Below are positions 2 through 39,689 of a stretch of 64,000 nt of DNA, in pieces; position 1 is the stretch's first letter, and every line of letters starts with the position of its first letter. This DNA comes from Eutreptiella sp. 'Long Island Sound 2002'. Its lineage: Eukaryota; Protista; Euglenida. The translations under genes were made by a program, and so were the position numbers. The notes below the pieces were generated by a model that was not told the DNA's origin, did not search any database, and saw only the letters and a list, made by a program, of their open reading frames with translations. The stretch covers positions 76,074,001-76,138,000 of the forward strand of contig OZ038379.1 of assembly GCA_964036045.1 (NCBI GenBank). The letters run 5' to 3'.

Positions 2-3000
2 AACAGGGGCTTTGTGCCCCCGCTGCGGGGCATCACCGACCCGGTCGCGCGTGCAGAGAAGGCTGCTGGGCTGGCGCAGGGGTACGACCAGGACTACCGT
101 GACTCGGAGGGGCGGTGCCTGTCTGACGAGGGGTTTATCCCTCCGGTCTACACACAGGAATATGTGGACCCAGATGGGCACTGTCCAGGGGAGCAGGGCT
201 TCATGCCACCGGTTGGGGGCGGTGATCCCATGGACTACGGGGCATACAACGCCCATTACCGTGATCGCGAGGGCCGCAAGCCTGGTGAAGAGGGCTTTGA
301 GCCACCCCTTGCCAGCCGCGGCCAGAGCCCCCGGGAGGGCTACGACGAGTTTTACCGTGATGCCCGGGGGCACAAGGTGGGCAATGCCGGCTTCCTGCCG
401 CCCACCAAGACACAGCCAGTTGTCATGTATGACAAGCAGAAGGGGATCGTGCACATTGTGCCCAAGGCTCCTTCAACCCCGGCCTCCAGCCCCGATGCCC
501 TGGAATCCAGGCCCGTAGAGATACCGTTCACCTTTCCGGTGTACACCGATGCCTACGTGGATGACTATGGCCGCAAGGTGGGAGAGACTGGGTTCATGCC
601 GCCAGGCCACGTTGGGATGCCCCTCCCTGAAGGGGGCTACACCGACCAATACCGGGACCGGGCCGGGCGGAAGCCTGGCGAGCGAGGGTTTGTGCCGCCC
701 AAGGCCTACATCGAGGGGAAGACCCCGGAGCAAATGGCGCTGGAGCTGCCCCAGGGCTTTGATGAGGGCTACTTCGACTCTGAAGGCCGGCAAATGGGAC
801 ACCCTGACTTCCGTGCACCAGCGCCGCGCCCAACCGACGGCCTCTTGGGCCTCGAGGAGAGCGGCTTCCAACCAAACTCCTCCATCTATTACCAGCAGAG
901 CTTCTGCGATGCGTCCGGCCTCATGCCCGGCGATGACGGTTTCATGCCGCCGGGAAAGAAGCGGGCAATGGAGGCGGGCACCTACGATGACCACTACGTG
1001 GACCCCAGTGGCAAAGTTGCGGGGGAGCCAGGGTTCGTGCCACCCGGCAAGACCTTTGGCCTCCTGGAGGGCTATGACGAGTTCTACCGTGACCCGAATG
1101 GCTTTGGCCCCAGCGACCCCAGATTCACCCCACCAAAGGTCAAGATCCCATCCCAAGGGTCGCAGAGGAAGATAGTGCGCCGCCGGTCCACGGCGCCCAC
1201 AATTCGTCGCATCACGGGGCTGCGGTACCATTTGGACTCCGTGAGGCGGCCCATCGGGGTGCTCTTGGACATGTCTGGCAAGCCCATCTACTATACATCC
1301 GCCTGGCCCGCAGTGGTGTGGTCCACCGATGTGGGCGCCCACGTGGCCATCGCAGACACGATGGTAGACGATGTGGCATCTGCCAATCCGGACCTGCTGG
1401 TGGTGGACCGCAGCCCACTCACCAACCTGCACACTGGCCGGCCACTGAGCCTCAAGCGCGCGCGGCGCATTGCGCACTACCTGTGTGACAAGTCTGCGAA
1501 TTTCCACGCCCACTCACTCGACCCAGTCACGGATGTGTACGGGGACACCTGCTTTGACAAGACCGGGCGGCCCATCTTTGTTGTCAAGCCCAAGGAGTGG
1601 GTGAGGGCCCCAGACGGCAGCAAGGTCCTGGATGCGACCGGCCAGCCCATCTCCCAGCACACCGCCCAGCGCTACCTGGGCATTCCCCCGGGAGAGGCCC
1701 ACATGTGGGTGGCGGAGGTGGAGGTCTCCGACAAGGGCCAGGTGCTGTACAACGTTGATGGGAGCCCGCAGCTGCGAGTCGTGAAGTCAAAGAAGACGAA
1801 CATTGTGATCAAGGGGCCCTCTGGCAAGGCCCTACAGAATGTGGACAGCAAGGCCTTCACGCGGGGAGAGCTGCAGACAATGGCGGGGCAAAACAAGGTG
1901 CTGGTGCTCTCCCGCAGACGCCAGGACGCAGTGCCTGCCCGATCAGAGGAGCACCCAATGGCGCTGGTGGTGGATCAGTCGGGCGGGCCAGTGTATGACC
2001 GGTCTGGCTGGCCCATGCTCATCCGGCACGACCCCGATGACCTTCAGGACAGGCTGCGGCTCTTCATCCTCCCGGACAGCACCCGCCCGCACGTCGTGTT
2101 TGGTCCTCAGGAGACCCCCCTCACACACCAGCTGACCGGTCTGCCACTGACGCAGAAGCGCGCGGCCCACACCGCCCGCTTCTCTGCGTCCGTCACTGAC
2201 GAGTATGAGGTGGGTGTGATCAACGGCCCCGACGGGCATCCCCTGCGCGATGTGAATGGCAACCCGGTGTTCCAGCGGACCAGGCGGCGCCCTGGCTACC
2301 TCAAGGGGCCGGAAGGTTCGCGCCTGCTGGACGCCAACGGCAAGACCATCACCGCGAGCCAGGCTGAGCGCATGGCCGGGATCACATGGGAGGACATCAA
2401 CAGCTACACTGTGGAGTTGGTATTGGACGATGATGGGCTTCCTGTGTATAGTGGCGGGAACCCGGTGATCCGCCAGGGGGCCCTCAAGGAGGGCAAGCCT
2501 CACTTCCTGGACGCCAAGGGGCAGATTGTGTGTGACGCCAAGGGCAAGCCCCTGACAGAGGGCCGCGTGCGGCAGATGATGAAGGACAAGGAGCTGGTGC
2601 TGCTGTCCCAAGTCCGATCCAAATACTTTTCCATCGACGACGACCTGTCGGGCGAGGAGTCGACTGAGTCGGACTCCTCCATCGCTTCATCTGGCCGAGA
2701 GGCCCGTGACCCCTATATCGCACACATCACCTCTGACGTGCCCTCCCGCGTGCCGTCACTGTCGCACCCAAAGAGCCCAAGTCCCGGCCTTGACAAGACC
2801 GACTCCGTGCAGTCGCTGACGCGGCAGACCTCCACGCCCTCCCCGCGGGACTCTGTGTCCTCTGCCAGCGTACCTACCCCCACCAAAGACAAGCGGCCCG
2901 GGAAGGGCGACCCCAGTCAGGGCTCGCCCTCCAGCAGTGGGGGTGTGGAGTCACCGGGCCTGGGGCTGGAGGTGGCTTATCTGGGGCTGAGGGTGGTTGA

Positions 3001-6000
3001 GCTTGCGCAGGGCCAGGTCCGTGTGCCAAGTGGCGCGGTCAAGGTGATCAGCGCCGCAGGGCCCGCAGCACGCGCTGGGATCCTGCCGCAGGACCTCATT
3101 GCGCAGATCAACGAGGACCCAGTCCCCACATTGGAGCATTTCCGGGGGGTAACTGCCGAGCTGCGCCCGGGGGTGCCCTGCAACGTGCACATCGAGCGCA
3201 ACCACCGGAAGATGGTCTGCAAGCTGACCCCGGTGGCTGGGGAGCGTCGCCCAAGCGGGAAGAAGGCCCAGCCAGTCGACGAGGGGTCAAGCATGGGGAA
3301 GCGTGGGAGCTCTGGTGGGTCCACGACCCCCCGCAGCACCGGGGGAGGCGGCACCAGCCCCCGCAGCAGTGGGCATTCAGGCGGCGGGACGCCCCGGACT
3401 GCACCATCCGGGGGGAATACCCCACGCTCCTCTGGCCCTGCCTCCTCCGGGGGCGGCACCCCTCGCAGCAAGTCCGACAAAGCCCCAAAGCAGGGGGGCG
3501 GAGCACAGCCTTCTACGCTTGATTTTTCGACCTCTGCCCCGGCTCCGGCACGTCCGCCAGTGCCTCCTGGCCAGTCGCGTGTGACTGGGCTGGAGGTGAC
3601 GGCACGGCTGGCCATCATGCAGGAGGAATGGGAGGAGCGGGTCAAGTGCCTGAAGAAGTTTGTGGATTCAAGCCCGAGCCGTGCCGCAGTCCCTGATGTT
3701 GAAGCAATGCACCAGGAAGCGCCAACGGGGGACCTGTCGGTTCGCTGTTACGGACCACACTACCGGGACGCAAAAGGGCGGAAGCCTGGGGACCCAGGGT
3801 TTGTGCCACCGCTGACAGGGGTTTTGGACGAGGCCGAGCGGCAGCGGAAGGCGGCAGGGCTGCTCGATGGCTATGATGGAGATTATCGCGATGAGAATGG
3901 GCACTGGCCCGGCAGCCCCCTTTTCATGCCCCCCTGTTACAACGACAATTACACAGACGCCAACGGGCGGCATCCCGGCGAAGCGGGCTTCTTACCCCCG
4001 GGATCTTCGCAGCCGCTGAATGAGGGCATGTATGACGCTAACTACCGCGACATCAACTGGCGGCGGCCCGGTGACCGTGGTTTCATCCCGCCAATGGCAG
4101 CCAAGTATGGCATGACGGCAGAGGAGATGGCAGTGCAGCTGCCCATCGGGTACGACGACAAGTATGTGGACCCTGAAGGGCGGGTGTCCCATGAGTCCGG
4201 CTTCATCCCTCCCCACCAGCAGGAGGTGTCCTTTATTCGGGAGGCTGAGTTCTCACTGTTCGTGCGTGTGCTGACGGCAAAGGTTGAGACCAGCGAGGAG
4301 GAGTTGCAACCCTACACTGTGCTGCGTGTGGGCAATGTGCGGCACAGCAGTACCATCAAGAAGTCCCGAGTGCCTGAATGGAACGAGACCTTCCAGTTCG
4401 AGAACCCAGACCTTGATACGCAGACCCTCGACGTTGCACTGTACTCACAGAAGACCCCTGCCGACGTGTCTTTGGGCAAGGCGCGTGTCAACCTTGCGGG
4501 GCTGAAGCAGACCACGACGCAGGCGCTGGACATCCCCTTGATGCTGAAAGGCGATCAGGGGCAGTGGGTTGAGGTGGGCAAGATGCAGGTGCTGCTGGAG
4601 CTGCGCAGCAGTGCTCCCCCGAAGTCCCCACCACAGCCACGCTCCGAGAAGCGGCTGCGGGCGGAGCTGATCAAGGCTACCGGGGTGTCGAAGCGCGCAG
4701 AGGGCTGGTACGTGAAGCTGACGCTCGGGGGGCAGGTCAAGACATCGTCCCCAAAAGAGGGCACGCCACTCCCACAGTGGAATGAGCTCTTTGAGTTCGA
4801 CGTCATTGATGAGGCACGGGAGACCCTCAACATCACGCTGCTCGACGAGTCGGACACGACCCTGGGGTTGTACCGCCTCAAGTTCGACAACATGCCTCGC
4901 GAGGTGCGGCAGGAGGTTGTGGCGACCCTTCTCGTGAAGCGGACCGATGGCCAGTGGGCGCCGAACGACCCCCCAGACAAGCTCGTGCTGGGGTTGACAA
5001 CGGTCCGCTTCGGCCGCCCAGTGCGCGACAAAACCGACAAGGCCCGCACCACGGCAGGGTCCGCGGGACTGCCCGTGGGGTACACTGCCGAGTACCAGGA
5101 CCCCGCAGGCCGCTCCCCTGGCGTGCAGGGGTTCGTGCCGCCCGCCACTGGCTACGCAGAGCATGTCTCAAGCCAGGCGCCGCTGGACGCTGGCTGCTAC
5201 GACGAGGGCTACACGGACGCCCTTGGGCGGCAGCCAGGTGATTCGCACTTCATCCCGCCGTTGCAGGGCATTACGGACCCGGAGGTCCGCGCCGCAAAGG
5301 CCAAAGGGCTGGCGGACGGGTACGACATGGATTATCGGGATGCAAATCGTGCTGGGCCCCTAATGCCCGGGTTCATACCCCCCTGCTACACCATGGAGTA
5401 TGTGGACCCCAATGGGCGCCATGTTGGGTCCCAGGGCTTCATCCCGCCTTTGCACCGCCACGCGAAGGAACTCACACTGCCCCACGGCTGCTACGACGAG
5501 AACTATCGGGACGGCAATGGGCGGCGGCCAGGGGAGGTGGGGTTTGTGCCAGTGTTGCAGCACGGTAAGACCGCGCAGGAGATGGAGGCCAAACTGCCCA
5601 AGGGCTACGACGAGTTCTACCGTGACCCAGACAACAACAAGCCCGGGGCGCCACAGTTTGTGCCTCCCCGGCCATATCCCCCTACGTTCGCAAAGGGGCC
5701 GGTGCCAGGAACGCTGCTGGGCGAACCAGAGGTTGCTGGTGGCGCTGCGGCTGTGACCGGGCCCACTAGCAGTGACAGCCAGGGCCTGCCTCCAGTCGTC
5801 TCTGCCCGCACTGGGACTGAGGTGGTCATTGACCCAATGCGTGCAAAGTCGCCTGTGGAGTGGAAGATCCCTCTGGGGGTACAAGGCTCAGGGGCGCAGC
5901 AGGGGGGCAATGCCCTTGCTGCCCCTGCGCAGACCTCCACAGATGCCTGGGTGCCCACAAAGCCGCCTGGAAAGACTTCATCAATTGCAGCGCTCGGGGA

Positions 6001-9000
6001 CAGCAGTGCACGCCCCACCGCCCCAGGTCCGTCACAGTGCAGCAAGCCTGGAGAGGAGCGACCCAAGCCTGGGTACGTGCCCCCTCTGACCTCCAAAACT
6101 GATCCCACTGCCAAGCCGCCAGACGGCTCTGACTCCGGGAGTGAGGGCAGCGGCGGCGTGGCCTACACAGCCGACTACCGCGATGAGAACGGGAAGGCAA
6201 TCGGCGAGGAGGGCTTCATCTCCCCAGTCAGTGGGCAGCCACTGCCCGCTGGCAGCTACGACTCTGGGTTCCGTGATGAGGATTTCCGGAAACCTGGGGA
6301 CCCCGGGTTCAAGCCTCCAGTGACAGGGCTGATGGACGCGGGCACCTGCGAAAAGAAAACAGCGGGGCTGGAGACGGGGTATGACGAGGGGTATGTGGAC
6401 CTGCAGGGCCGGCAGACTGGGGAACCAGGGTTCGAACCCCCAGGCCCTGGCAAGCCCTCGGTCTCCACAAAGGGCAGCGCGATGGCCAGCCCAGGAGGCC
6501 CAGGTGGCTCGGAGTTCTCCCTGGCGCCCGCCAGCCCGGTCTCCCTGACTGGCGACCACATGGCTGGAGACGCGAGTGCCCTCCCCCCACTCAAAGAACT
6601 GAAGGTGCTGCTGAATCAAGTGACCCGGATCGAGGGTCGAGGGGTATCAGATTCCTCTGCTTGGTATGTCCGCAGCCGCATCGGTGCCAACGAGTATTGC
6701 TCGCAGGTTAAGAACGGCAGTGACCCAATGTTCCATGAGACCTTCGGGCTGCGCGTGTCCGACGAGGTCAGCGAGACACTGGACCTCAGCCTCATCAACG
6801 CGAAGACCGGCGAAGTGCACGGGCAGGCACGCGTTGGCCTTGGGGACCTTCTGGCGACCTCACAACCGTCCGCCGTCACGCTGTTTGTGCAGGACAAGCT
6901 GAGCGGGCAGTGGGTGGAGACTGCCACCGCGACCCACTTGGAGCTGGAGCCCATCGGATTTGGGGCAATGCCGGACGGGCAGCTGGAAAAGCAGTTGACT
7001 GTGGAGGTGATCCAGGCAGCGTGCCCTGGCATCCCTCCAGGCCGCAAGGGCCTGACCCTGACCCTGAAGCTTGGGCAGCATGCACGACACACCACCCCGA
7101 AAATCGCAAGTGCAAAGATCCGCTGGAAGGAGCTGTTCCGGTTCCCTGTGGGGGATGCAACGAAGCAGACGCTAGACCTGACGCTGCGCGATGGCAAGGG
7201 TGAGGTGCTGGGAATGCACCGGCTGAAGATTGACGGGCTGAGGGATGGCGTCCGACAGGAAGTGGGTGCGACGCTGCATGTCAAGAAGCGCGGCAAGTGG
7301 GTAATCCCAGATCTCCCGACGCGCCTCGCCCTCGGCTTGACCGTGCATGGCCTTGACCTGTACAACGACTCGTATGTGGACGCCTTTGGGCGCAGCCCCG
7401 GTGAGATTGGGTTTGTGCCGCCTCTGCAGGGCAAGCATGGCATGACTCCCGAGGATGCTGCACGCGAGATGCCAGGGGGTTACGATGCCAACTACCGAGA
7501 CCGCTGGGGCAGGAAGCCCGGCAGCCGCGGGTTCCAGCCGCCGGCAGGCTGTGGTTCCCCATTGCCGCGCACTGGCAAGCGCCAGGGCACTCCTGTTGAA
7601 AAAGCCATCATCCCAGGTCAAGTGTCGACAACGGGGACATACGGCAGTAACTACAACGATAGCAACGGCCGTCGCCCCGGAGAATTGGGGTTTGTGCCGC
7701 CTCGGGCCGCCGCGGCGGGGATGACGGCATCTGAGATGGGATCCAAGATGCCGGAAGGCTATGACGAGTTCTACCGGGATGAAGCTGGGCGGAAAAAGGG
7801 CGAGCCAGGCTTCCGACCCCCATGTTATACTGATGATTATCGGGATGCAGCTGGAAGGAGACCAGGGGATGATGGATTTATCTCCCCGGTCACCAGTCAA
7901 GCCCTGGCCAAGGGAGCGTATGATTTGGGCTACCGGGACTCTTGCTGGCGGAAACCTGGGGACACTGGATTTACGCCCCCTGGTAGTTCAAGGGGACTTC
8001 CAGAGGGATATGACCAGGATTATGTGGATGAGTTGGGCCGGAAGATGGGCGATGCAAGCTTCACACCGCCAAAATATGATTCGGACTATGCGGATGATGC
8101 AGGCAGGCGGGCTGGAGAGGAAGGGTTTGTACCACCTGGCAAGACAAAAGGATTGGGGGCTGGAGAGTATGATGAAAATTATTGTGACCAGAACCAGAAG
8201 CGCCCAGGAGAGGAGGGGTTCATTCCCCCAATGCAGGGTGCAGCAGGAAGGACAGCGGAGGAGATGCGGCAGCTGCTGCCGAAAGGCTACGATGATGGAT
8301 ACCGTGATGTCAATGGTAAGCGTAAGGGCGATCCAGGGTTCATACCACCACAAGCCAAACTACCGCTGGTGTATGACAGCACGTACACCGACCCCAGTGG
8401 CAAGCAGCCTGGGGAGGTCGGGTTTGCGCCCCCTGTGCACCCACCCACTGACCCCCCCAAAACATTCCCAACGGATGGCGCCTATGATGCGCAGTACCGA
8501 GACGACTCTGGGAAGAAAGCGGGCGACAGTGGATTTGTTCCACCGCTGCACGGCATCACTGACCCAGTCAGACGGGCATCAAAAGAGAGTGGTCTCGCTG
8601 TGGGATGGGATGAGGATTACTATGACCCAAGTGGAAACCATGCAGGCGTTGATGGTTTTGTCGCCCCGAGCTACACTTCGGACTACGTTGATTCTGAGGG
8701 GCGTCGACCAGGTGAACAAGGGTTCCTGCCTCCTGGCAAGACCGCCAGCATGAGGATGTACCATGCTGGTGAGTATGATTCGCGGTACCGTGACCAAAAC
8801 GGCCGACAGCCTGGGGAGCCTGGATTTATCCCTCCGATGCATAAGGATAAGAGTGCAGCAGAGATGATCACAGCTTTGCCGGATGGTTATGATATGAACT
8901 ATGTGGATCCGAATGGACACAAGCCCGGGCAGCCCGGATTCCAACCGCCAAAGCCACCAGGCAAGAAGCCACTGCTGAAGAAACCGGGCAAGTATGATGC

Positions 9001-12000
9001 TTCTTATAGAGATGAGAATGGCCGGAAGCCCGGGGACAGAGGTTTCATCCCCCCACTGGCAGCTGCAGATGGTGATACTGCAGCAGAGATGGAGCAGAAG
9101 CTTCCTCAGGGGTATGACGAAAACTACGTGGACTCTGGTGGGCGGTCGATTGGAGATGAGGGCTTCAGGCCTCCGAGCTACACAGCTGACTATGTGGATG
9201 GCAATGGCCACCGACCTGGAGAAGCAGGATTTATGCCACCCACTGAAACTGGAAAGGCAGCTGGTAAGCAGCTTGGGGCTGGGGAGTATGATGAAGGGTA
9301 CCGGGATGCAAACTTCAAGAGGCCTGGGGAGCCCGGGTTCATTCCGCCGGAGCGTGCGGTGGAAGGTTACACGAAGGAGCAGATGATGGAGATCAATCCA
9401 ACCGGGTATGATGACAAGTACCGAGACAGGGATGGCAACCAGGCGGAGGACGACGGGTTCCTCCCCCCTGTCGAATTCCTGCGGGACTCGTTTGATGGAC
9501 TGGCCCCTGCGTGTGGCGGACATGTAGCACCAGCTGCACCACTGGCCTTTGGCACCTACACTGGCACATATCGTGACGTTAATGGCCGTCGCCCCGGAGA
9601 ATTGGGGTTTGTGCCGCCTCGGGCCGCCGCGGCGGGGATGACGGCATCTGAGTTCGGATCCAAGATGCCGGAAGGCTATGACGAGTTCTACCGGGATGAA
9701 GCTGGGCGGAAAAAGGGCGAGCCAGGCTTCCGACCCCCATGTTATACTGATGATTATCGGGATGCAGCTGGAAGGAGACCAGGGGATGATGGATTTATCT
9801 CCCCGGTCACCAGTCAAGCCCTGGCCAAGGGAGCGTATGATTTGGGCTACCGGGACTCTTGCTGGCGGAAACCTGGGGACACTGGATTTACGCCCCCTGG
9901 TAGTTCAAGGGGACTTCCAGAGGGATATGACCAGGATTATGTGGATGAGTTGGGCCGGAAGATGGGCGATGCAAGCTTCACACCGCCAAAATATGATTCG
10001 GACTATGCGGATGATGCAGGCAGGCGGGCTGGAGAGGAAGGGTTTGTACCACCTGGCAAGACAAAAGGATTGGGGGCTGGAGAGTATGATGAAAATTATT
10101 GTGACCAGAACCAGAAGCGCCCAGGAGAGGAGGGGTTCATTCCCCCAATGCAGGGTGCAGCAGGAAGGACAGCGGAGGAGATGCGGCAGCTGCTGCCGAA
10201 AGGCTACGATGATGGATACCGTGATGTCAATGGTAAGCGTAAGGGCGATCCAGGGTTCATACCACCACAAGCCAAACTACCGCTGGTGTATGACAGCACG
10301 TACACCGACCCCAGTGGCAAGCAGCCTGGGGAGGTCGGGTTTGCGCCCCCTGTGCACCCACCCACTGACCCCCCCAAAACATTCCCAACGGATGGCGCCT
10401 ATGATGCGCAGTACCGAGACGACTCTGGGAAGAAAGCGGGCGACAGTGGATTTGTTCCACCGCTGCACGGCATCACTGACCCAGTCAGACGGGCATCAAA
10501 AGAGAGTGGTCTCGCTGTGGGATGGGATGAGGATTACTATGATTCCCAAGGCAGGCGTTTTAGAGACGAGGGATTCATTCCTCCAACCTACACTTCGGAC
10601 TACGTTGATTCTGAGGGGCGTCGACCAGGTGAACAAGGGTTCCTGCCTCCTGGCAAGACCGCCAGCATGAGGATGTACCATGCTGGTGAGTATGATTCGC
10701 GGTACCGTGACCAAAACGGCCGACAGCCTGGGGAGCCTGGATTTATCCCTCCGATGCATAAGGATAAGAGTGCAGCAGAGATGATCACAGCTTTGCCGGA
10801 TGGTTATGATATGAACTATGTGGATCCGAATGGACACAAGCCCGGGCAGCCCGGATTCCAACCGCCAAAGCCACCAGGCAAGAAGCCACTGCTGAAGAAA
10901 CCGGGCAAGTATGATGCTTCTTATAGAGATGAGAATGGCCGGAAGCCCGGGGACAGAGGTTTCATCCCCCCACTGGCAGCTGCAGATGGTGATACTGCAG
11001 CAGAGATGGAGCAGAAGCTTCCTCAGGGGTATGACGAAAACTACGTGGACTCTGGTGGGCGGTCGATTGGAGATGAGGGCTTCAGGCCTCCGAGCTACAC
11101 AGCTGACTATGTGGATGGCAATGGCCACCGACCTGGAGAAGCAGGATTTATGCCACCCACTGAAACTGGAAAGGCAGCTGGTAAGCAGCTTGGGGCTGGG
11201 GAGTATGATGAAGGGTACCGGGATGCAAACTTCAAGAGGCCTGGGGAGCCCGGGTTCATTCCGCCGGAGCGTGCGGTGGAAGGTTACACGAAGGAGCAGA
11301 TGATGGAGATCAATCCAACCGGGTATGATGACAAGTACCGAGACAGGGATGGCAACCAGCCTATAGAAGCTGGCTTTGTACCCCCCTCACCACCGCAGCG
11401 AGGAAGCCAACCACTCCAACCAATCCAATCACCCCACGAACTGCAATCCCCACCCACTGACCCACAACAGAAAGTGGGTGACCCCTATCCACAACCCCTG
11501 CGTGTCCTGCAACACCAGGAACCGCGTGTAAGCAACCCCCTTGCGCCCTTGGAATATTCTTCCGCTTACCGCGATCAGAACAACAGACAGCCTGGGGAGC
11601 CAGGATTCATTCCACCACAGTATGCCAACACAGGCAAGAGTGCAGCAGAGATGGCACTGGCTTTCCCTGGGGGTTATGACAGGAACTATGTCGACTCCAA
11701 TGGTCTCAAAGCAGGCCAGCCAGGCTTTGTCACCCCTAGGGCACCACTGCCCTCGCCACAAAAGCCAGGGTTGTACAACAAACACGGCCAGAAAACGGGT
11801 GATGAAGGCCACACGGTTCCAGAGTTGGCTGCAGCTGGGGCAGCTTTGCCTGCTGCAGAAAAGGACAGTGAACAACCACCTGACGAACAGCTGCACCCAC
11901 CTGGGCACAGGCTGGCGCATCCTGGGCCCATTGGGCTGGGTTCTCTCACCCTCGAAAGCAATGAGCCTTATCCAGATCCAGTCGGCCCAGTTTCTGGCCC

Positions 12001-14050: not shown

Positions 14051-14464
14051 GTTATCCTGCTCTCCTGCCCTACCAACCATGATATATGTTTCCTTTTTTT
14101 CATTTTGAATAGAATCAGGTCCATATGAGTTGGGGCAGGATTTCCTTCGCTGGGCAAAAGATTCTTTGGGGCATTCAGTGACTGAAGGTCAACAGAGTTT
14201 ACCCTCGTTTGCATTCCAAATGGTCCTTTCACATAGACCATGGATTGAATTTTATTTCCGCAACCCAGCAACATGTAATCAGTGGTGTTGTCCGTGCTAC
14301 ACGAGGTGTTGGTTTCAGATTTTTCCTGGAGACAATATTGTGCCCCACTGGGAGTCCAGATCTAGAGGCAAATGAGAGGATGAAGGAGCACAATGCTAAG
14401 CAGGTAGTGGCTTGGTAGGCTGATAGTGTTGGACCCAGGCCTTTGCTTAGTGGCTGGTTGATAC

Positions 14465-20048: not shown

Positions 20049-20051
<3 letters not shown>

Positions 20052-20081
<30 letters not shown>
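20052..20081 (+). repeat. (GT)15 microsatellite
   Basis: Direct reading. Confidence 0.95.
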
Positions 20082-20082
<1 letters not shown>

Positions 20083-29200: not shown

Positions 29201-30067
29201 CCCAACTACGTTAATGCTAATGGCCGCAATCCTGGGGATGTTGGATTCATTCCCCCTTTTGGCAACCTGCAGGACCCAAGTCGGCAGGCTGTGAAGGCGG
29301 CAGGGCTTCCTGAAGGGTTTGACGCTGATTACCGGGACTCCAAGGGCCGCAGTCCACACGACGCTGGCTTTGAACCCCCATGCTATACATCCTCGAACCA
29401 AGACGCTGCCAGCCGACATCCTGGTGACGCTGGCTTCTTGTCTCCTACCCCTGACTCCAGCCAAGCGCAGCCTCTGAAGCAAGGGCAGTATGACAGCAGT
29501 TACCGCGACGCCAATTTCCGCAAGCCTGGTGAGAAGGGCTTCATTCTGCCTCTAGAGGCAGCCGCGGGGCGGACCGTGGCAGAGATGACAAAGAAGTATC
29601 CTGATGGGTATGACGAGCACTACATGGATTCCAAGGGTTTGACTCAGTCCCATCCAAGATTCACGCCATCCTCAATCTTTGGGACTCCAGAGAAGCCAAA
29701 GATTTACACGGGTAAGCGCCTCCATGTGGACATATTGAAGGCTACCATCCCCGACGTCGCGCATACCACATACATGAACGTTGAGGTGGGTAAGCAGCTA
29801 CAGAGTACTGCAGTGCAGCCCGCCTCTTCCAATCCCACCTTCTCAGAGAGCTTCGAGTTTGTGGTCAGCGACGAGGAGGTGGAGACACTAAACCTCACAC
29901 TGTGCAATGATCAGCACAACGTGCTGGGGATGTACCGTCTGAAGATCAACTCGCTTGAGGAGGGTGTGCGGCAGGAAGTCACCCCAAAGCTATTCAAGAA
30001 GAGTGCCAGTGGGCAGTGGGTTGTGCCAGACAGCCCCACACGGCTGACCATTGGTGTCACTAGCCAG
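20234..30067 (+). CDS. Exon B of giant protein (9,834 bp, 3,278 codons)
   Basis: Continues the split C2 domain; has 20 core repeats, ~7.5 C2-like domains and a ~1,250-aa S/E-rich region. Ends at TSQ cag|gtttgt where sibling domains continue SQGFG. Confidence 0.9.
26014..28866 (+). repeat. Intragenic duplication: 26014-27297 and 27595-28866 (offset 1,581 bp; 12 bp shorter in copy 2)
   Basis: Each copy holds five core repeats and two C2 domains, with alternating near-identical and diverged blocks. Confidence 0.95.
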
Positions 30068-31469
30068 GTTTGTCAGGGGCAACACATTGGCAATGGGGGA
30101 CCAATATGTGTGTAGTCCTGTCCGAAGGATTTTCAACTGACAGTTGTTTCAAATGGTCTCCACAAACTGTGGCCCCTGCTCCTCATCCAGGGCCAGGGGG
30201 TGGCACTGTGGTGATGCTGTGGTGGCCCATTCAGTGCCAGTTCTTGTATGCATGTGGATATCCCTTTCACATCAGTTCGGGAAGACGTGCTGAGGTCCAT
30301 TTTGATTTTGTTGTGTTTGAGTTTTGCCTACCGGGGTCTTCTCAGGGCTTGTTTTTCTCCTGTAGAACATTCCCAAGGATGCCAAAACTTTTCTCCAGCC
30401 CATCTTTGAAAGTTGTAACGCTCCTTATAGCTCTCCAATAGTCATGAATGAGATATTATGTGCACATCTGTCAAACGGCTAAATCGTGCCAACCCACATG
30501 TTGGAGACACAATTCGTTTTGGGTGTCTTCAAGTGTTAATGCGTTCATCCTCTCATGCGTTGCTTGTCGGCCCCATGCACTGAGATAAGTGATTCTCATA
30601 GTGACAATAACAACCATTTTTGGTTTTAGTGTCACAAGCTGAGCATTCAGGTGCATGTTCCTAGTCAATTACTTCATCTGGATTAAACTCTGTGTTCCAC
30701 GTATTTGTGCAACATCCAAACATTGATAGCAAGTGATAGACTCACCGTTGCATTGAGGCCCCGCATTTCTCTCCTTCACAGGTTAGGGTTTGGTTTGTCC
30801 CTTCAATTTCCCCCCTCCCTTCTCCCTAGCTCATTCTCTTCGTTCCATGTTTCTAGATTTCTCATCATACACATCTAGCAATGTGTTCATTTAGGATGCT
30901 TCGTAGTTCCCAAAAATCGGCACACTTGGGGGGGGGGGGGGGGAGGCTTGTAGCTGCGGTGTTAAAGCTTGATTCACCGGAATGCTTTCTCTGTGATATT
31001 CCAATCCCTAAATCCTGTGACAATCCTATAACAATTGGTATAAACTGTTATTGTATGGCTTTTGCAGCAGTCCCAGTGTTGTCTAGTTGGCATGTCTGTG
31101 ATGGTCGGTGATCCTTGACACACTCCAACAGCTATGGTGCTATGTTGTCTCGGAATGATAGCTCTGGTTTTCACCCTCTTGGGTGAAGGCCTCTGTGGTT
31201 CCCAAAATGTTTCAGCGTTGGTGAGTGGTGTTGCTTTGATATTGGTGAGTAAATGGCCTGGTTTTCCATTCGCAGACTAAGGGAAAGGTGTTATGTTCTG
31301 TGGGTTGTTGAGAGTGGGTTGGTGAGAAATTGTGGAAAAAGTAGGGGGAAACCAAGAAAAACTAGGAAAAGGCAAGATTACCTTGGAAAAACATGTTCAG
31401 GTGGGAAGGAACTCAAGCGGCAATTGAAACATCGGAAAATTATGGAGTTACATAGAAAAAAGGATGGGC

Positions 31470-33200
31470 ATTGGGTTTAGGTCTAGTTACCGACTGGGTT
31501 TGGTCTATGAAGGTTTTACAACCCTTTTTAGGGTCCAGGGTGAGCAACACATTTTAGCAGCAGCAGAGCAACAGGCGGTTACAAAATCCTTTTTGGGACA
31601 CCGTGGCTCAACAACCGGCATTTAGGTAGCTCAAAACAACCGTTGAGCAAATGTGCATCACTTGCCACAAGTTTTCAGCCGCCCAGCCCGCTTTATGGCC
31701 AATTTAGTGTCCAAAATGGATATTTTTAGGCTATTTTCAGGACGATTGCCAGTGCGGCAAGCAGGCGTCTCCAACGAGGGCCGTTCTTCTTCCATAGCGT
31801 TTGGGCAATGAAATGATTGCGAAGGGGTGTTGAAAGAGGCATCTCCCACACCGTGGTGCCACGCGGTGGCCCATTTTGAGTTGAAAATGAGCCGTTTTGG
31901 AGTTCGTTTTCAACACCATCATCCTCAATGTTTAGAGTATTGCCAAGGTGTCAAGCGGGTGTCCGGCATTGAACTATCCGTGGCTCAACACCGGCATCTA
32001 GGTAGCTCAAAACGACCGCACATCAAATGCAACAAGTTTTGTGCCATTTTGAGCCGCCCGGCCCGCTTTTTGGCCAATTTGGTGTCCAAAAATGGCCGTT
32101 TTTGGGCTGTTTTTGGGACGGGTGTCTTACAGTTTCGGGCGATTACCCGTGTGTCAAGCAGGTGTCTCCAACAAGGGCCGTTCTTCTTCCAAAGCGATTG
32201 AGCAATGAAGTGATTGCAAAGAGGTGATGAAAGAGGTGTCTCCCACCCCGGGGGGGCGGCCGGGCCCGGTCCTTGTATGCGACACCCCCCGCCCCCCCCC
32301 GAGTTTTGAAAGATAGTGGTGTGGGGGCCATGGCACCAACGGCGCCAAATTTTTTGTCCCATACTTAGTTGAGAAGGGTACCATGCCTTTAGTCTTTAAG
32401 ACCCTTAAGACTTTTTTCCTGGCAAAGACAAGATACCGCTATTATCGCATACATACCTCTTCATTGGAGACGCTTGCTTGACACACTGGCGATCGTCCTG
32501 AACTTTTAGCACGAGCGTCCTGAAAACATCCATTTTTGGGCACCAAATTGGCCCTAAACCAGGCTAGGCGGTGCAAAATGGCACATAACTTATTGCACAT
32601 GATGCACCTTTGCTCCGCGGTAGTTTTGAGCTACCTAGATGCCGGTTTTGAGCCACAATGTCCCCCAAAAATAGTGTCCCAAAAGACTTTCGGTCATGCA
32701 ACAATTGAACAATCTCAAGCGACCTAAGGGCAATCACTGTCCAAAGCGCCCCGAGCCGAAGTCCAAGGAACCGAATGAATAATAGATGTACGCAATGAGG
32801 CAGTCATCAAAGCCCGACTGGCTTATAATCGCCTCCTTGCGGCTGCTGTTGTTGCTTGCTCAAAAACGGCTCATTTTTGCCTCATAATGGACCACTGCGT
32901 GGCACCACAGTGTGGGAGACGGGGGGGGGGGGCGACTGCAACTGGTCCTGATGCGACCCCCCCCAACCTCTCTCAAAACTTGCCGGGGGGGGGGGGGGGG
33001 GGGGGCAACCCACTACCATCACATGCATACACCTCAAGGGGGTGTCTGGGGCATTTTCTTCCACAGCGATTGAGTTCACAAATGATTGCAAATGGGTGTT
33101 CACTCCGGCATCTCCCACGTTGTGGTGCCATGCGGTGGTCCATTTTGAGGTGAAAATCAGCCATTTTTGAACCTTTTTGCAAGATGATTGTCGTGAATGT
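31470..33200. repeat. Dispersed/foldback repeat family with internal direct and inverted copies
   Basis: ggcat(t/c)taggtagctcaaaac at ~31617 and ~31993, with an inverted copy at ~32625-32650; gcatctcccac...gtggtgcca.gcggtgg.ccattttgag at ~31840 and ~33108. Confidence 0.6.
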
Positions 33201-33290
33201 GCAGGACCATATCCAATGCAACCCGTTTTTCTTCCACAGCCGTTTCCCATGCGTTTGGCAAGACCAGGACCCAGCTTGGTCCTAGTCGTA

Positions 33291-34045
33291 CACCCCCCCC
33301 CCCCCCTGTATAAGCTACGCCCTTCTCCAAGCTACAGTAGGCGTAGGGACCGTAGCAATTTGGTACCTAATTTTAATTCGGTACCAAACGTAGTGCAACC
33401 ACATAAGACATGGGTTTCACGAATTTGCCAGTCACATAGAGTCATGGACACATTTGTTGTGAGTGTTTGCCCACTTGAAACCACCCCATTTCTGAGTCCT
33501 CTTCTTCAAGTGATGATTCTAGTGACTCTGATGATGCTCCCACTGAATTTGTTTGGGCTAAGGCTGCCCGAGGTGTGTGGGGGAATGGCCCTTGTCTTTG
33601 ATGGGAAGTTGTATTTTACAAGAGACCACATGCAAGGCAATTTTCATTCCCAAAAACTTGAAGTTGCCTCAGCCCAATCCAGCCCCTAAACCTCAGGCAA
33701 AGGCATCTTCAAAGGCATGTTCAAGTGATGAGCATGTGCAGTTGTTCCGCATGGTGTATGATCGCAAGAAGGGTTTCCAAGCCGAACATTTGTAGGCTTC
33801 TCATGCTTCATTGCTTGTGAGAATATGGGTAGGAACCTGAATTTCCATGTTTCAAACACTTTCTAGTGTTTGCATGCCTTTGTGAACGTGGGTGGAGGTT
33901 GAGGTGCATTCATACTATGCGCTCACTTACGTGTGTGTCGTTAGTTGCATGTGTCGTGCGCAAGCTACGCCCGTGTCCAAGCTACAATAGGCGTAGGGAC
34001 CGTATTAATTTGGGACTTTGGCGTAGCTTATACAAGGGGGGGGGG
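33291..34045. mobile_element. MITE-like element (~755 bp) with poly-C/poly-G plus 15-bp TIR, flanked by TA
   Basis: Left Cn-tgtataagctacgcc; right ggcgtagcttataca-a-Gn; TA at 33289-90 and 34046-47. A subterminal ~45-bp direct repeat aagctacgccc..tccaagctaca.taggcgtagggaccgta occurs at ~33312 and ~33962. Confidence 0.7.
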
Positions 34046-35152
34046 TAAGTCTTGATTTAGGTCTAGGCAACCCCCCCCCCCCCTTGCTCCCCCAATTGCA
34101 TGTTTCCTTCCTTTCTTAGTTGCTCCCTTGTAAAGTGGAATAGGACTTTCTCCCATTTGCTGTACACAATGATGTTTGTTTCGTCAAGTTTAGTCTCCTA
34201 CAAGACCCGTCCAAGAAATAGTTGCTATCTTCTTCTTTGTCCAGTGCTTCGAAATTGGGCCACAATAGTAGTTTTTCTCCCTCATCTTCCATTGCCTTCT
34301 ATCCTCTTGCTTTATCCTCTCAAGCTTGTGAGTGCCGGGGCTGCCTCTTCATCTTCTTTGGCCTCCCCTACTTACCTCCTCCTCCCACTGAATTTTGTCG
34401 AGGGTAGAAGCGGCTGTGGGTGGCCTTCATTTTTTTGGCCGTGGACTTGGAGTGGAGGGAACTTTGCCATATCACTTCCTTAGGCAACCGTGTCTATACT
34501 TTTCTCAGGTTCCCCTAGTTTTTCCTGAGGTTTTCTAGTTATGCCCTGGTTTGCTTGGTTCCGGTCCAGTTTTGCCTCGTCTTCCATTGCAGCTTGTGTG
34601 ATTTTGGTTTTGCCTTGGGAAGTGATGTTGTTTTGGCATTACCAACTATGGAGGCCCATGGGTGCTTGTCGTGCATTGCATAGAACTACCTTGGCACACA
34701 TTTTCTCATGTCTTTGGGGTTCTTTTGAGTGTGGTCCTTGAATTCGTGGATGCTGGTGCCAAGGAGGTTGCTCTGCAACAAGACCCAGCTATTGGCTGGA
34801 TAAAATTGTTTCAGAAACCTTAGCTTTGTTTCAGCTTTGTTTAGGCACGGGGGGCTCGCCGGGACCGGACCCTTTACGCCGACTCCCCCCCCCCCCTCCG
34901 GGACCGGACCCTTTACGCCGACTCCCCCCCCCCCCCCCCCTCCCTGGAAATTGGCTGGAAAGTGCCGGACCATGGGCGCCAAAGGCGCCCTAAGGAAAAT
35001 TTGCTTGAACTAGTAGAGGGTGAAAAAATGGGTTTTCACCCCATGTGTCTCTACTCAAAATACTCAGTTTTTTTGAGGAGAACACAATCATGGATGAAAA
35101 CCAAATTGGACCAAATATGAATACCACCTCTGTGCAAAGGTGTGTCAGAGAT

Positions 35153-35224
35153 GGCCTATACCCTAGTGGGTAAAGCAGTGCCTCTGCAACTGAATGGTCC
35201 TGGGTTCAAACCCTAGTGGGGGCA
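35153..35224 (+). pseudogene. tRNA-Cys(GCA)-like pseudogene / SINE head
   Basis: tata.cc.agtgggtaaagca...ctgcaa...ggtcc-ctggg-ttcaaac-cctag: the T arm pairs, the A and B boxes and a CT-GCA anticodon loop are recognisable, but the acceptor and D stems are broken. Confidence 0.5.
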
Positions 35225-35297
35225 GTCTGCAGGACTAGAGCAGGCAAGATGGAGGACACCATGGGAAATTTTTTGTTTTTGTTTTTTTTGTGCTTTG

Positions 35298-35550
35298 ATT
35301 TTGTCCCCTTTGTTGGGGATCCCTAAGAAAGCAGGGGTGACGTAGCATTTCCACCCACTTGTGGGCCCCCTAGAAGGCAGGGTTTAGGCAGCGAATTCTG
35401 CTTTTGTCCCCCTTTATTTGGGGATCCCCGAGAATGCAGGGGTGATGTAGCATTTCCGCCCTTTTTTGGGCCCGCTTTGATTTGTCCCCTTTGTTGGGGA
35501 CCCCCAAGAATGCAGGGGTGATGTAGCATTTCCGCCCTCTTTTGGGCCCG
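35298..35550 (+). repeat. Three-copy ~80-100-bp minisatellite
   Basis: tttgtcccctt..t.gggga.ccc.aga..gcaggggtga.gtagcatttcc at ~35300, ~35403 and ~35481. Confidence 0.85.
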
Positions 35551-36159
35551 CTTGGGACAAGCGCTCTTAGCGCCTCTTTCATTACCTTCCTCAACTCCAC
35601 CACTCCAATCACCCATGTTTTGAGGCCCCAAGGAGGAGAACCCCATGAAGGGCACGCGGCGCGTTGGTGCACATGATGTACAACCGGTGTGCGGGCATAG
35701 TGTGTGTGCACGTTTTGGGCACATAGTGCGTGGAGAGAACTTTTTTATAGAAAACGTATTGCGCGCGTTGCAAACCCTCCCCCCCCCTCTCCTCCAAAGG
35801 GTTTCAAAACATACATCAACTCCTTCTTCACAATATGCATGGTTCAGCCTGGGTGGGGCGCCACTGGCAACAGTGGCCGGGAATTGACTCAGGGGTGGTG
35901 CTATGCCCTTAAACACAGGTACCACCTATCATGCCCCCCCCCCCCCTTTCGCATTTTTTTTGCCAACATACATTCCGCAAAAATGTCTAGCGCAATGAGG
36001 GGGTCATTTTAAGCCATATATGTTGGGGTCCGGGTGCCCCCCTCCCCTTCAGCCGGCCCCAGACCCCCCCCCCCCCCCGTCCCGAAATTGGCTGGAAAGT
36101 GGGAGGGAGTCGGCGTATGGCCTGATGGTACGCCCCCCCCCCCCCCCCGTGTGTTCATA

Positions 36160-37111
36160 AGTCGGAGCGCCGACACAAGCAACTGGCAAAGGGAAGCAAA
36201 ATCACGCTCGAAGCGCCCGAGGCAGGCAGGCTCGGGAGTGCTTCAAGGGGTACAAGACCTGATTGCAGAGTTGGTAGCGAAAGGGTACAGAATTGTATAC
36301 ACAGACGGGTCCTCAAAAAGATTGAGCCACAGAGACACGCGCAGGGCAGGTGGCTTCGGTGTACTCGCGACAGAAGATGAGCAAGGGCCGGAAGTGCGTT
36401 TCTGCGGCTACGTACCGACGCGTCACAGGCAAACAAACAACGGTGCCGAGCTCTGGGCAGCACTGGAAGCCCTACAGGGGTTTTGGGTGCCAAAATTGGC
36501 AATCCTCACCAACTCACAGTATCTGCAACTAGGGGCGACCGGCAGGGCACAGCACTGGAAAATCAAAAGGGTGGACGACAACATCCGGCAAGCTGCAAGT
36601 CCACGTGCCCGTCTTGGAAATGCTGCTCCAGGAAATGGCAAAGCCAGGAAGAGAAGTCAGGTGGGAACACGTCCCAGCACATGTTCACGTGCAGGGGAAT
36701 GAGGTGGCAAATGGATTGGCGATGGAAGGCATGTGCTCCAGTCCACTGTGGTCCCAACAGGTCACACAGCAATTGTCATTCGGATCGGAATCCACGGTGG
36801 GGTTGAGAGGAGGGTCTGGGTCCGAATCAGAGGACACCAAAGCGCTGTGGTCGTCCTTGGGCATGGTACCCATGGACAGTGATGAGCTGACAGGGGAAGC
36901 CTCCGAGGAACCAGCACCACACGAAACGGAATCATGCAAATTGTGCAGTTCGGGCAGTGAGGAAACAGGGGCAGGGTACGTGCAAGTGGGAGGATGGGAA
37001 GAAATGTCTGAAACTGAGTCACGGTCCTTCAGCATGGATGTGAGTGACACAAGGCGACAGCGTAAGAGGCGAAAGTTCAGGAAAAGCAGAAACTCTGGAC
37101 AAGGTCGCTAG
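36160..37111 (+). pseudogene. RNase HI-type domain with acidic/basic tail (frameshifted; probable 3' remnant of a retroelement)
   Basis: IVYTDGS, QTNNGAEL, ILTNSQY (D>N), HVPAH...GNEVANGLA (D>N); frameshift near 36560-36605; no RT upstream. Confidence 0.7.
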
Positions 37112-37326
37112 CAACTGTGCCCGTGAACTCCGCATCTCGACTGCAGTATCTCCACAGGTTTCATACCTGCAAATGCCTGAACGCCCGAAACCTACGTCCT
37201 GACGCAGGAGAATTTTGACGTGAACTCCGCGTTCTGTCGCGAAGCACGGCAGCAAAGAGGCTTGGCGACGGCAACGGCTGAGTACTAACACAAAATCCGC
37301 GTCCTGTCGCGGAAAAGCTCTCTGGC

Positions 37327-37957
37327 GTGATGCCGCCGAGAAAGCCATGGAAGCAGCGGGGGGCCCAACAACATCGACATGGCCCATACACACAAATCAA
37401 TCCAGCCCCCAAGAAAGCCAAGCCCCAGCAAGAACGCCAGCGTTCTGAGCCAGCTAGACGCCTTAGCGGAAGAAGGGTTGAGAGCTGTCAATGCCGAGCT
37501 GACCACTTTGGCCTGGGCCCGTAATCTGCAAATCTGGCTCCGAGTGGACCAGCCTCACACCACCAGGATGCACTGTGAAATTGTGGACAAACATGGAGAG
37601 GCACTGCTGGTGAACAACCAAGAACTCTACTCGGTGATGGTCCAAATCAACTGGACTCTGAAGACTCAGGCTCTGACGAACATGCAGGTTCAATGGCTAC
37701 CCAAGAGTGCAGGCAAGTGGCATCCATTCCAATGGGAGGCAATCCTCCACTGTCCGACGGCAGAGGGACACAGAGCGGTACCCTCCTCTGTGAGCAGAAA
37801 TGGAGACTGCCTCCATGTATGGCTGACGGGCCGAGCTGATCTCATGAGGCTGTTCCAAAAAACGCTCTTCAGGCCAACAGACCCGGTATCCGGAGACGCT
37901 GTACGGTTCCTCTACACACTGCTGAGCACACCGCCATGCGAACGGCGATATGCCTAA
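37327..37957 (+). other. Unidentified frameshifted ORF remnant (possible ORF1/gag-like)
   Basis: A basic N-terminus MPPRKPWKQ... (37327) shifts into a 192-aa ORF of ordinary globular composition (37379-37957); no motif recognised. Confidence 0.25.
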
Positions 37958-37999
37958 CAGGAGCCAGCAAGCAGGGGGGTGTAAGATGAGGCACAGACA

Positions 38000-38250
38000 C
38001 TGGAGAGAGAGGGACGGAGAGAATGGGTGGGGAGGGTGACAAGGAAGAAAAACCCCTGGGGAGGGTGAAGAGAGGGAGAAAGAGAAAGGGCGAAGAGGGA
38101 GAGAGAGGGCGAGACGCAGAGAGAGAGAGAGAGAGGGAGACACAGAGAGAGAGGGAGGGCGAGCCACAGAGAGAGAGGGAGTGGGCGAGACACAGAGAAA
38201 GAGAGCGAAGCCCACAGAGCGAAAGGCCAGAGAGAGAGAGAGAGAGACCC
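38000..38250 (+). repeat. Compound (GA)n purine-rich microsatellite
   Basis: Direct reading. Confidence 0.9.
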
Positions 38251-39443
38251 GCAGAGCAAGGGTTAGAGACTAACCGGCACTGTGGGAGGGTGGTGGGTGC
38301 GAGCTGGCCCAAATGTACAGATGGCCAAGGCCAAAGCACAATCAGCAGCCACCTGGAGTGGTACAGAACTGGTCTGCGCTGCAGTGCAGCAAGGCAAAAC
38401 ACTGAACTGTGTGGTGATGACCATGCGCCTGTGACACGGGGGCGTATGCAAGCCCAGTATCCGTTGCCTCATGGCCGTGTGTTCAGGTGGGCCGGTAAAC
38501 CACAGGATGTGGAGTCTTACATCAAGAAGCATGCTCCCTAGGTGGTGAGTCATTTGGTTGTTCAAGATTGTCCTCTGGGACTATATCACACACAAATAGC
38601 AACACACAAATAGCTGTTTCCTTGTGAGACTTTTGTCACCATTGATCTGCTAGTGCGGTGACTCCGTCTGCGGTTCTAATTGTTCAGGGTTCTTCTTTGT
38701 TTGGTGTTATTATTGGGCGTCTCTTGTTTAGTGCGCCATTGCAACAATACATGGCTTCGGTGGGTTTCAATAGTGAAGTCTCATGGGCAGATATTCAATT
38801 CCTAGTTTCCAGGTGGATCACATAGTGAGCATTGTTAAGCACATCACATAAGTAGTCGGACACGCATGAGGCCGGAGATTCGGGGGGGCCCAAGAGATGA
38901 ATAGAGGTCGGGATATGAAGAGGGATATACACCAAAGGACAGATCATCAGGCAATCTAACTGAGACATCCATCACCGCAGACAGCCACTATAGGAAGGAG
39001 GAATTGGGCCATGGAATGAGTGGAGTGCCATCAACACAGCATCAGTTGGAAAGTGTGCAAGACCCTAGCATTGAGAGGACCGCAACAAGGATTGATACTG
39101 ACCTGGTGCCACCGGAGTCCTGAGATCTAGCGAAACAGGTAAGGAAGGAAGACCATGCCTTTCCATGAACCTGAATTTCGGGGCAAACACCAAATGGCAA
39201 AGCATTTTAAATAGGGTTAGTACGCAGTTCAATAGGGTAAGTACCAAGTGTTCCACCAACACCTTGGCTTAAATCAACTTAATTAGGTGGTTTGTGGCAT
39301 GATTACAGATTGGGATGAAGGTGTTCAAATGGTGAGGTCACCTAAATCAGGGCGCGGCACCTTTTCTTTCCTTGCTCGCTCGCTCACTCATCTTCTCCTC
39401 AATGCCCCTCGCTGTTGCCCTTCCATTCCTCCCTGAATCTTAG

Positions 39444-39689
39444 GGCTTCGGCAAGGGCTATGAAGCTCCAAAGGAGCTGAAGGTATTCTACGATGCAGGG
39501 CTGTACGACAGCACATATGTGGACATCTATGGCCGCTGGCCTGGTGAATGTGGGTTTCTCCCTCCACTGGAGGCAATGGCAGGGAAGACTCCGCAGGACA
39601 TGGAGCTAGAGTGCCCTGATGGATATGACAGTAATTACCGCGACCTCAATGGGAAGGGTCCGCAGGAGTCTGGATTCATGCCGCCAAAG
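39444..39689 (+). CDS. Exon C of giant protein (246 bp, 82 aa)
   Basis: ttag|ggc ttc ggc ... two core repeats (YDSTYVDIYGRWPGECGFLPP, YDSNYRDLNGKGPQESGFMPP) ... aag|gtattg. The ORF track shows only part of it (39519-39746). Confidence 0.9.

Follow-up and report, generated by a model that had tools for sequence, protein, structure and literature searches.

Euglenids are defined by the pellicle and by euglenoid movement, and the pellicle is a synapomorphy of the group. To our knowledge, few proteins of the pellicle or of euglenoid movement have been described beyond IP39 and the articulins, the latter being built of 12-residue repeats rich in valine and proline. Large cytosolic scaffolds that tether membranes to other structures are familiar from Piccolo/RIM-type proteins and from ferlins, extended synaptotagmins and MCTPs, which carry a PDZ domain and/or several C2 domains, the latter often as tandem pairs, and PDZ and LIM are the partner domains of actin-associated adaptors. 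More generally, C2, PDZ and LIM domains, ER/K-rich repeats and coiled coils are parts of cytosolic scaffolds that act at membranes and the cytoskeleton. The articulins of Euglena gracilis have been reported at 80 and 86 kD (PMC2289617). Here, we describe a giant repeat-bearing gene of the euglenid Eutreptiella sp. 'Long Island Sound 2002', located in a stretch of 64,000 nucleotides (nt) of the forward strand (assembly GCA_964036045.1, contig OZ038379.1, positions 76,074,001 to 76,138,000). We refer to this whole stretch as the window; positions are counted from its first letter, and negative positions lie upstream of it.

The gene encodes long arrays of a short core motif joined to C2 and PDZ domains. 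This motif appears to be the building block of an undescribed domain: five cores of 22-24 residues and four types of linker are confidently predicted to form a compact module of about 160 residues, the macro-unit. The best overall explanation of our findings, which we hold to be probable but by no means assured, is that the macro-unit is a folded repeat module found only in euglenids, and that it has been built into a giant C2/PDZ scaffold that links a membrane to the cell skeleton.

Core motif and linker order

Cores were located with a regular expression and then with a 24-position hidden Markov model (HMM) seeded from the strict regular-expression copies, using the six-frame translation of the window. 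Strict copies fall almost entirely into one forward frame (59 cores, codon starts 2 mod 3), with a single copy in a second forward frame and none in the other four. The HMM identifies 92 domains in a single forward frame between nt 77 and 29668 and two further ones at 39501-39689; by threshold, it yields 93 cores at E<=0.01 and 89 at E<=0.001. Outside the giant frame, the sole match of the six-frame search has an E-value of 0.88, and none is credible. The 138-kb locus as a whole holds 145 cores, and the 128 distinct copies among them give the consensus x-G-Y-D-x-x-Y-[RV]-D-x-x-G-R-[RK]-P-G-[DE]-x-G-F-[IV]-P-P-x, with the Phe conserved in 100%, the Asp in 99%, the Pro in 98% and the two Tyr in 95% and 91% of copies. 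Roughly ten positions of each core hardly vary, and among them are Gly, Tyr and Asp residues that lie outside any proline motif. A first-pass annotation of this DNA, made from the letters alone, had counted about 95 cores by hand, had given their consensus as Y-x3-Y-[RV]-D-x2-G-[RK]-x-P-G-[ED]-x-G-F-x-P-P and had inferred aromatic/proline packing. The 89-93 HMM matches in one frame bear out that count, the two consensus sequences agree, and the conserved positions are indeed aromatic, Gly and Pro.

The cores are connected by linkers of recurring type. Linker A comprises 17 residues (xGITDPxxRAxKAxGLx) and includes a basic helix, R-x-x-K-A-x-G-L. Linker B has zero residues, so that two cores abut, creating a PPxY sequence and a 22-residue period. 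Linker C measures 7-12 residues and ends in PLxxG, and linker D (14-16 residues, xxxGxTAxEMxxxLP) contains a T-A-x-E-M helix ending in L-P. Across the 138-kb locus, all 19 class B linkers have a class C linker next, and 13 of the 17 class A linkers have class B next. The ordered run A-B-C-D was observed nine times where 0.13 occurrences are expected, the maximum in 10,000 shuffles being three; part of these runs are recent tandem duplicates, and hence not all nine are independent. The same order is also found in Entosiphon sulcatum, Chasmostoma nieuportense and Ploeotia vitrea. Transition counts, shuffles and three other euglenid genera thus confirm the four linker classes and the preferred order that had been proposed initially. 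The size of the unit needs revision: in place of four cores and 115-125 residues, the folding unit comprises five cores and about 161 residues, or six cores if the preceding one is included, in the canonical order core-A-core-B-core-C-core-D-core. Within it, cores are specific to their position and their conservation varies accordingly: the core after linker B reads YT..YVD, and in the core after linker C the Gly of D-x-x-G is often replaced.

A fifth linker class, E, is absent from the initial description. It spans 25-60 residues and carries x-D-x-x-x-G-x-V-[YH]-x-V. A recurring long linker of the form x-[IVM]-x-D-x-x-x-G-[IM]-V-[YH]-x-V-x-P is also seen between core clusters, at about 420-480 of the window and in an upstream exon.

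Predicted structure

We applied AlphaFold2 to the macro-unit encoded by nt 26000-26482 (161 residues), using an alignment of 32 macro-units. The first-pass annotation had proposed such a prediction, and it returned a confident fold: the mean predicted local distance difference test score (pLDDT) is 94.7, the predicted template modelling score (pTM) is 0.85, and four of the five models have a pLDDT of at least 94. DSSP assigns three short helices to the model, one in linker A and two in linker D, and otherwise isolated bridges only. Such bridges, for example Tyr3-Phe20 and Tyr66-Phe83, connect the first Tyr of a core with its Phe and thereby close the core into a loop. The suggestion that each core is a beta-hairpin is therefore not supported as it stands, as regular hairpins are not predicted. 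The macro-unit is instead confidently predicted to be held together by contacts among aromatic, Pro and Gly residues, and not by regular helices or sheets. The macro-unit model has no structural neighbour in the PDB. Foldseek template modelling scores (TM-scores) do not exceed 0.12, and the noise includes the choline-binding module 7pl5 (E 3.7, TM-score 0.08 to 0.12).

How might consecutive macro-units be arranged? We modelled a supra-unit of 346 residues that spans window positions -154 to 883. The model (pLDDT 84.7, pTM 0.56) comprises two confident bodies, residues 1-205 and 229-333, and a disordered joint at 212-228; linker E is predicted as a beta-hairpin packed against the first cluster of cores. 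A comparison of this model with PDB structures did not reveal a neighbour either. Because a disordered joint separates the two bodies and the pTM is only 0.56, we read the arrays as beads on a string rather than as a continuous rod, and the filament that had been suggested for them is not favoured.

Phyletic range and relatives

The first-pass annotation knew of no Pfam family with this consensus, and Pfam searches bear this out: neither whole exons nor three repeat-rich pieces searched at the permissive threshold of E<=10 match a family in the repeat. A search of PDB sequences gave nothing below an E-value of 0.02, and a search of the ESM Atlas gave no usable match. In the literature, full-text searches, which extended to Euglena pellicle proteomes, returned no description of the repeat or of its peptide strings. 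We then used a profile of eight macro-units for an exhaustive HMMER search of 1.84 billion representative proteins (E<=0.001). It yielded 64 matches, two of which are the window's own ORFs (open reading frames). Matches that bear an organism name belong to Entosiphon, Chasmostoma, Ploeotia and Eutreptiella and are all derived from transcriptomes. The single named outsider is a dinoflagellate chlorophyll a-b binding (light-harvesting) polyprotein, matched weakly over a short stretch similar to PGDxGW; we take this match as probably spurious and do not count the polyprotein as a family member. Most of the weaker matches that were inspected still bear the core motif, and the core consensus is present in 70 of 71 proteins (the 64 matches plus cluster members). 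A word search with the macro-unit profile added 13 small fragments that lack organism names, and no new taxa. The repeat family is thus likely, but not proven, to be restricted to Euglenida. The domain family appears to be new, and perhaps its fold is as well.

In the Eutreptiella genome, the repeat is confined to few loci: that of the window, an inverted pair on C19, and loci on C14 and C3. The C14 paralogue has an exon of 1610 codons on the minus strand (C14:52515610-52520439) that encodes 21 cores, followed by a long AEEERK repeat with the appearance of a single alpha-helix spacer and then by a cluster of four to five LIM domains (E 8e-50 for Pfam LIM). In a relative from Entosiphon (P0004), four macro-units are flanked on either side by a long stretch that reads as coiled coil, and in one from Chasmostoma (P0007), a single unit is followed by about 530 residues that read as coiled coil.

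Gene structure

Two giant ORFs lie on the forward strand in the same frame, at 14-14128 and 20129-30115, within open frames of 5006 and 3333 codons. Together with a third, short exon, we read them as exons of one spliced gene because a C2 domain is split at intron 1 and because the borders are GT-AG in phase 0. Exon A (1-14050), the open frame of which begins about 900 nt upstream of the window, ends at the donor CAG/GTTATC. Intron 1 (14051-20233; 6183 nt, phase 0) leads to exon B (20234-30067; acceptor tgtacag/GAC, donor CAG/GTTTGT), and intron 2 (30068-39443; 9376 nt, phase 0) to exon C (39444-39689). The latter, of 246 nt or 82 codons, is in phase 0 at both ends (cttag/GGC, AAG/gtattg) and encodes two cores, at 39501-39569 and 39618-39689, joined by a class D linker. 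All four exon-intron borders are GT-AG and in phase 0, and three of the four are flush with matches to domain profiles. Across intron 1, our own C2 profile is matched from position 7 to 61 up to nt 14050 and resumes with positions 62-106 at about nt 20231. Because of this exact split between profile positions 61 and 62, we reject two separate genes for the giant ORFs. A bacterial giant protein is likewise rejected, given the low ORF density outside the exons, the absence of tRNA genes, the intron-like GT-AG junctions, the eukaryotic C2 and PDZ domains and an assembly size of 2.28 Gb. For annotation, this locus is instructive in that exons of 10-15 kb belonging to one gene, split by transposon-filled introns, come to be called as separate proteins, as in the public gene calls here.

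The encoded protein exceeds 8,300 residues inside the window, and exons that may belong to the same transcript continue on both sides. Upstream, an exon of 1775 codons on the same strand (positions -29431 to -24410) encodes 43 cores. Downstream, an open frame at 54529-54984 on the forward strand matches Pfam C2 (37.5 bits, E 2.9e-9) and probably represents another exon further downstream, either of this gene or of a paralogue in tandem; our C2 profile has matches at 52839-53135 and 54655-54879 in this part of the window. Cores and C2 domains reappear on the same strand at 87-92 kb, downstream of the window.

Both introns contain remnants of mobile DNA. That in intron 1 stems from a transposable element that is abundant and unclassified. 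Its ORFs at 16281-17291, 17304-18359 and 18771-19520 (336, 351 and 249 residues) all lack a Pfam match; the middle ORF has at least 116 scored genomic copies among 6216 candidates, some of them in open frames of about 1230-1250 residues. In intron 2, the ORF at 36034-36702 encodes an RNase H domain (Pfam E 9.9e-11) and probably belongs to the remains of a retroelement occupying this 9.4-kb intron. Two poly-C tracts of about 15 nt (39905-39925 and 40060-40080) lie in the next intron, shortly 3' of exon C. Transfer RNA genes were looked for in the window, and none were found.

Protein architecture

Pfam and profile searches were run exon by exon. Pfam C2 (PF00168) scores 134.1 bits in exon A (four stretches) and 179.5 bits in exon B (seven stretches) at a cut-off of 22, and in exon B it is the only family above its curated cut-off. 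Our own C2 profile finds 15 whole domains in exons A and B, in addition to the one split by intron 1. The layout is a regular alternation of a five-core macro-unit followed by two C2 domains, and it is clearest at 26000-29188. Here, a super-repeat of about 527 residues (macro-unit, C2, C2) occurs twice in tandem, with macro-units at 26000-26482 and 27581-28063 and C2 domains at 26531-26833, 26918-27217, 28106-28405 and 28487-28786; the macro-units of the two copies are 98% identical and their C2 parts 80%. A further macro-unit (29189-29674) and a C2 domain (29714-30007), both found with our own profiles, follow directly.

The remaining features, all on the forward strand, were placed by the core HMM together with a listing of linkers or by our C2 profile, unless stated otherwise. 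The first feature of exon A inside the window is an array of ten cores (77-1138), part of the supra-unit that starts upstream of the window, and a PDZ domain (PF13180, PDZ_2) follows at 2978-3211 (Pfam E 1.4e-7; 32.1 bits, cut-off 27). A canonical five-core macro-unit (3743-4216) precedes a tandem C2 pair (4232-4945), which is matched by Pfam C2 and by our profile at 4232-4561 and 4643-4945. Core arrays at 5075-6445, with a macro-unit at 5192-5671 and more cores at 6158-6445, are succeeded by a second C2 pair (6650-7288), by the longest array, of about 42 cores (7355-11740), and by a third C2 pair (12302-12985). A macro-unit variant of order A-B-C-A (13280-13762; linker listing) and the first half of the split C2 domain (13883-14050, profile 7-61) conclude exon A. 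The second half of that domain (20234-20359) opens exon B and is followed by a C2 domain (20453-20749), a degenerate macro-unit of five cores (20852-21409), a Ser/Arg/Glu-rich stretch of 1317 residues (21410-25360; translation and motif scan) and another C2 domain (25361-25648). The Ser/Arg/Glu-rich stretch is low-complexity in look and probably disordered.

Such long Ser/Arg/Glu-rich stretches, with RRxS-type sites, separate the arrays. Four of these sites (three RRTSV and one RRMSM) lie at 22862-23800 in similar contexts and resemble targets of basophilic kinases. A second short repeat is found upstream of the PDZ domain, at 1262-2560: about nine copies of [LV]-D-x-x-G-x-P-[IV]-[FY], such as LLDMSGKPIYY, FDKTGRPIF and RDVNGNPVF, have no Pfam match. 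The longest array contains a tandem duplication of 1917 nt (7634-9550 and 9551-11467) with 93.6% DNA identity. Its similarity is patchy, as two blocks of about 700 nt are free of mismatches and the 122 differences are all clustered at the unit ends and in the middle, a pattern that could possibly stem from gene conversion, from a duplication of very recent date or from partial collapse in the assembly.

Proposed function

What might such a protein do? Because the partners of the macro-unit are C2, PDZ and LIM domains, an ER/K-rich repeat and coiled coils, a role as a cytosolic scaffold is suggested. We envision that the C2 pairs would anchor the protein to a membrane from the cytosolic side, a contact that Ca2+ perhaps controls, and that the macro-units would be rigid beads, setting the distance between C2 pairs and binding a partner in the cytoskeleton or the membrane skeleton. 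The whole protein would then represent a multivalent tether between the membrane and the cell skeleton. The cortex of the pellicle emerges as its most likely site, a tentative assignment made from the phyletic pattern because the family occurs in euglenids that have pellicle strips and our searches did not reveal it in other groups. More speculatively, and with considerable doubt on our part, the macro-unit might be a new fold, nearly free of helices and sheets and closed by Tyr-Phe bridges and Pro/Gly packing, that originated in the stem lineage of the euglenids as a component from which the pellicle is built, and the giant C2/PDZ protein might be a missing tether. If so, this tether would join the membrane skeleton or the sub-pellicular endoplasmic reticulum to the plasma membrane, and it may serve Ca2+-regulated euglenoid movement.

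Several observations weigh against a euglenid-specific scaffold between membrane and cell skeleton, or at least limit its reach. The binding partner, localisation and Ca2+ dependence of the proposed tether are all putative, and restriction to euglenids fits many euglenid-specific structures besides the pellicle. That restriction itself is blurred by the many matches that are Logan or ENA contigs without an organism name. The macro-unit alignment is shallow, with 32 rows that are mostly paralogues, and the fold is a prediction. A word search for a transcript of the locus with the start of exon B gave nothing, and in the search of the large protein set the only matches mapping to the window were its own two ORFs, so that expression and exon joins are what we infer here. 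With a C2 pair as query, PDB sequences were not matched at E<=0.001, as these C2 domains are too divergent. Furthermore, our C2 profile found no C2 domain at the C14, C19 and C3 loci, and Pfam found none in the C19 protein and in the Entosiphon relative. The existence of relatives without C2 implies that the macro-unit is a mobile module with a role of its own that is independent of C2.

Could this role be the binding of Ca2+ or another ligand, with acidic core residues coordinating cations and the macro-unit acting as a Ca2+ sensor together with the C2 domains? Acidic residues recur in each core (a near-invariant Asp9, Asp in most copies at position 4, and either Asp or Glu at position 17), macro-units adjoin C2 domains, and bound ions often stabilise folds that have little secondary structure, as in thrombospondin type 3 repeats. 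However, these acidic positions are each paired with a conserved basic residue (R8, R13 and R/K14), which suggests salt bridges, and we find neither a DxDxDG, EF-hand or RTX-like signature nor a Pfam match to Ca2+-binding repeats. AlphaFold2 also gives a confident fold without ions, and the same conserved residues are kept in the relatives that lack C2, all of which makes Ca2+ binding by the macro-unit unlikely in our view. It is conceivable, but distinctly unlikely, that stacked arrays form a continuous rod, spring or filament with a spacing or load-bearing role, in the manner of titin-type rulers. The very large gene with up to about 42 consecutive cores would fit such a structure, as would the coiled coils and the ER/K-rich repeat of the relatives, which are typical of spacers; yet the two separate bodies of the supra-unit model with their disordered joint (pTM 0.56) do not, and in exon B the macro-units are kept apart by C2 pairs and long disordered-looking stretches. 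Finally, the cores might not fold at all and might instead offer short linear motifs rich in proline (PPxY, FxPP), which would attract partners of the WW, SH3 or EVH1 type or promote condensation. PPxY, the classical WW ligand, is created at class B junctions, Pro and Gly abound in the sequence, and regular secondary structure is scarce according to DSSP. Such an array would have no need for the fixed linker order that is conserved across euglenids, nor would it account for the confidence of the macro-unit model (pLDDT 94.7, pTM 0.85) or for some ten near-invariant positions per core, some of them outside proline motifs, and we deem it very improbable.

Comparison with known systems

A different possibility is that the macro-unit is a divergent version of a known hairpin repeat (RHS/YD, MORN or cell-wall/choline-binding), possibly in an extracellular protein. 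RHS/YD repeats (PF05593) share a length of about 20 residues, a Tyr-x-Asp-x-x-Gly-Arg signature, a high copy number and occurrence in very large proteins, and the core segment Y-[RV]-D-x-x-G-R resembles the YD signature YxYDxxGR, a likeness that we treat as a lead only. MORN repeats (PF02493) have a period of about 23 residues, comparable to the 22-24 residues here and to cell-wall-binding repeats, are rich in Gly and aromatic residues, and occur in protist proteins that link membrane and cytoskeleton. A choline-binding module, as noted above, surfaces in the Foldseek noise at E 3.7. Nevertheless, Pfam has no match to RHS_repeat, MORN or CW_binding, either in the exons or in the three pieces at E<=10. 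The PG-[DE]-x-GF-x-PP half of the core is not known from YD repeats, and the beta-hairpin shell of the latter is not predicted here. MORN repeats follow another consensus and build an extended beta-sheet, whereas our model is nearly strandless. As for cell-wall/choline-binding repeats (PF01473), the Foldseek match to 7pl5 has TM-scores of 0.08 to 0.12, and regular hairpins are again not predicted. The partner domains (C2, PDZ, LIM) are cytosolic, which disfavours an extracellular role and sets the protein apart from the secreted or toxin-associated RHS/YD proteins. Taken together, descent from one of these repeats seems to us barely plausible.

In its overall architecture, the protein encoded in the window is analogous to Piccolo/RIM-type proteins and to the multi-C2 tethers, namely ferlins, extended synaptotagmins and MCTPs, with homology apparent only in the C2 and PDZ domains. 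None of these is known to carry the Y-D-G-F-PP macro-unit; conversely, we have not seen transmembrane, SMP or zinc-finger parts in the Eutreptiella protein. The comparison with PDZ-LIM adaptors is instructive in another way. The macro-unit family is joined to a PDZ domain in the gene of the window and to a C-terminal LIM cluster in the C14 paralogue, so that here PDZ and LIM reside in separate paralogues and the new repeat makes up the bulk of each protein. A module of 160 residues with little secondary structure and no neighbour in the PDB is a worthwhile target for structure determination and a candidate for a new Pfam entry. A family that combines this module with C2, PDZ, LIM and coiled-coil partners offers concrete candidate genes for cortical scaffolds in euglenids.

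The articulins are the closest parallel from euglenids themselves. The window is devoid of their 12-residue Val/Pro repeat, and the two repeats have no sequence similarity to each other. Articulins are nonetheless euglenid membrane-skeleton proteins made of short tandem repeats, and they thus provide a precedent for lineage-specific repeat proteins of the pellicle.

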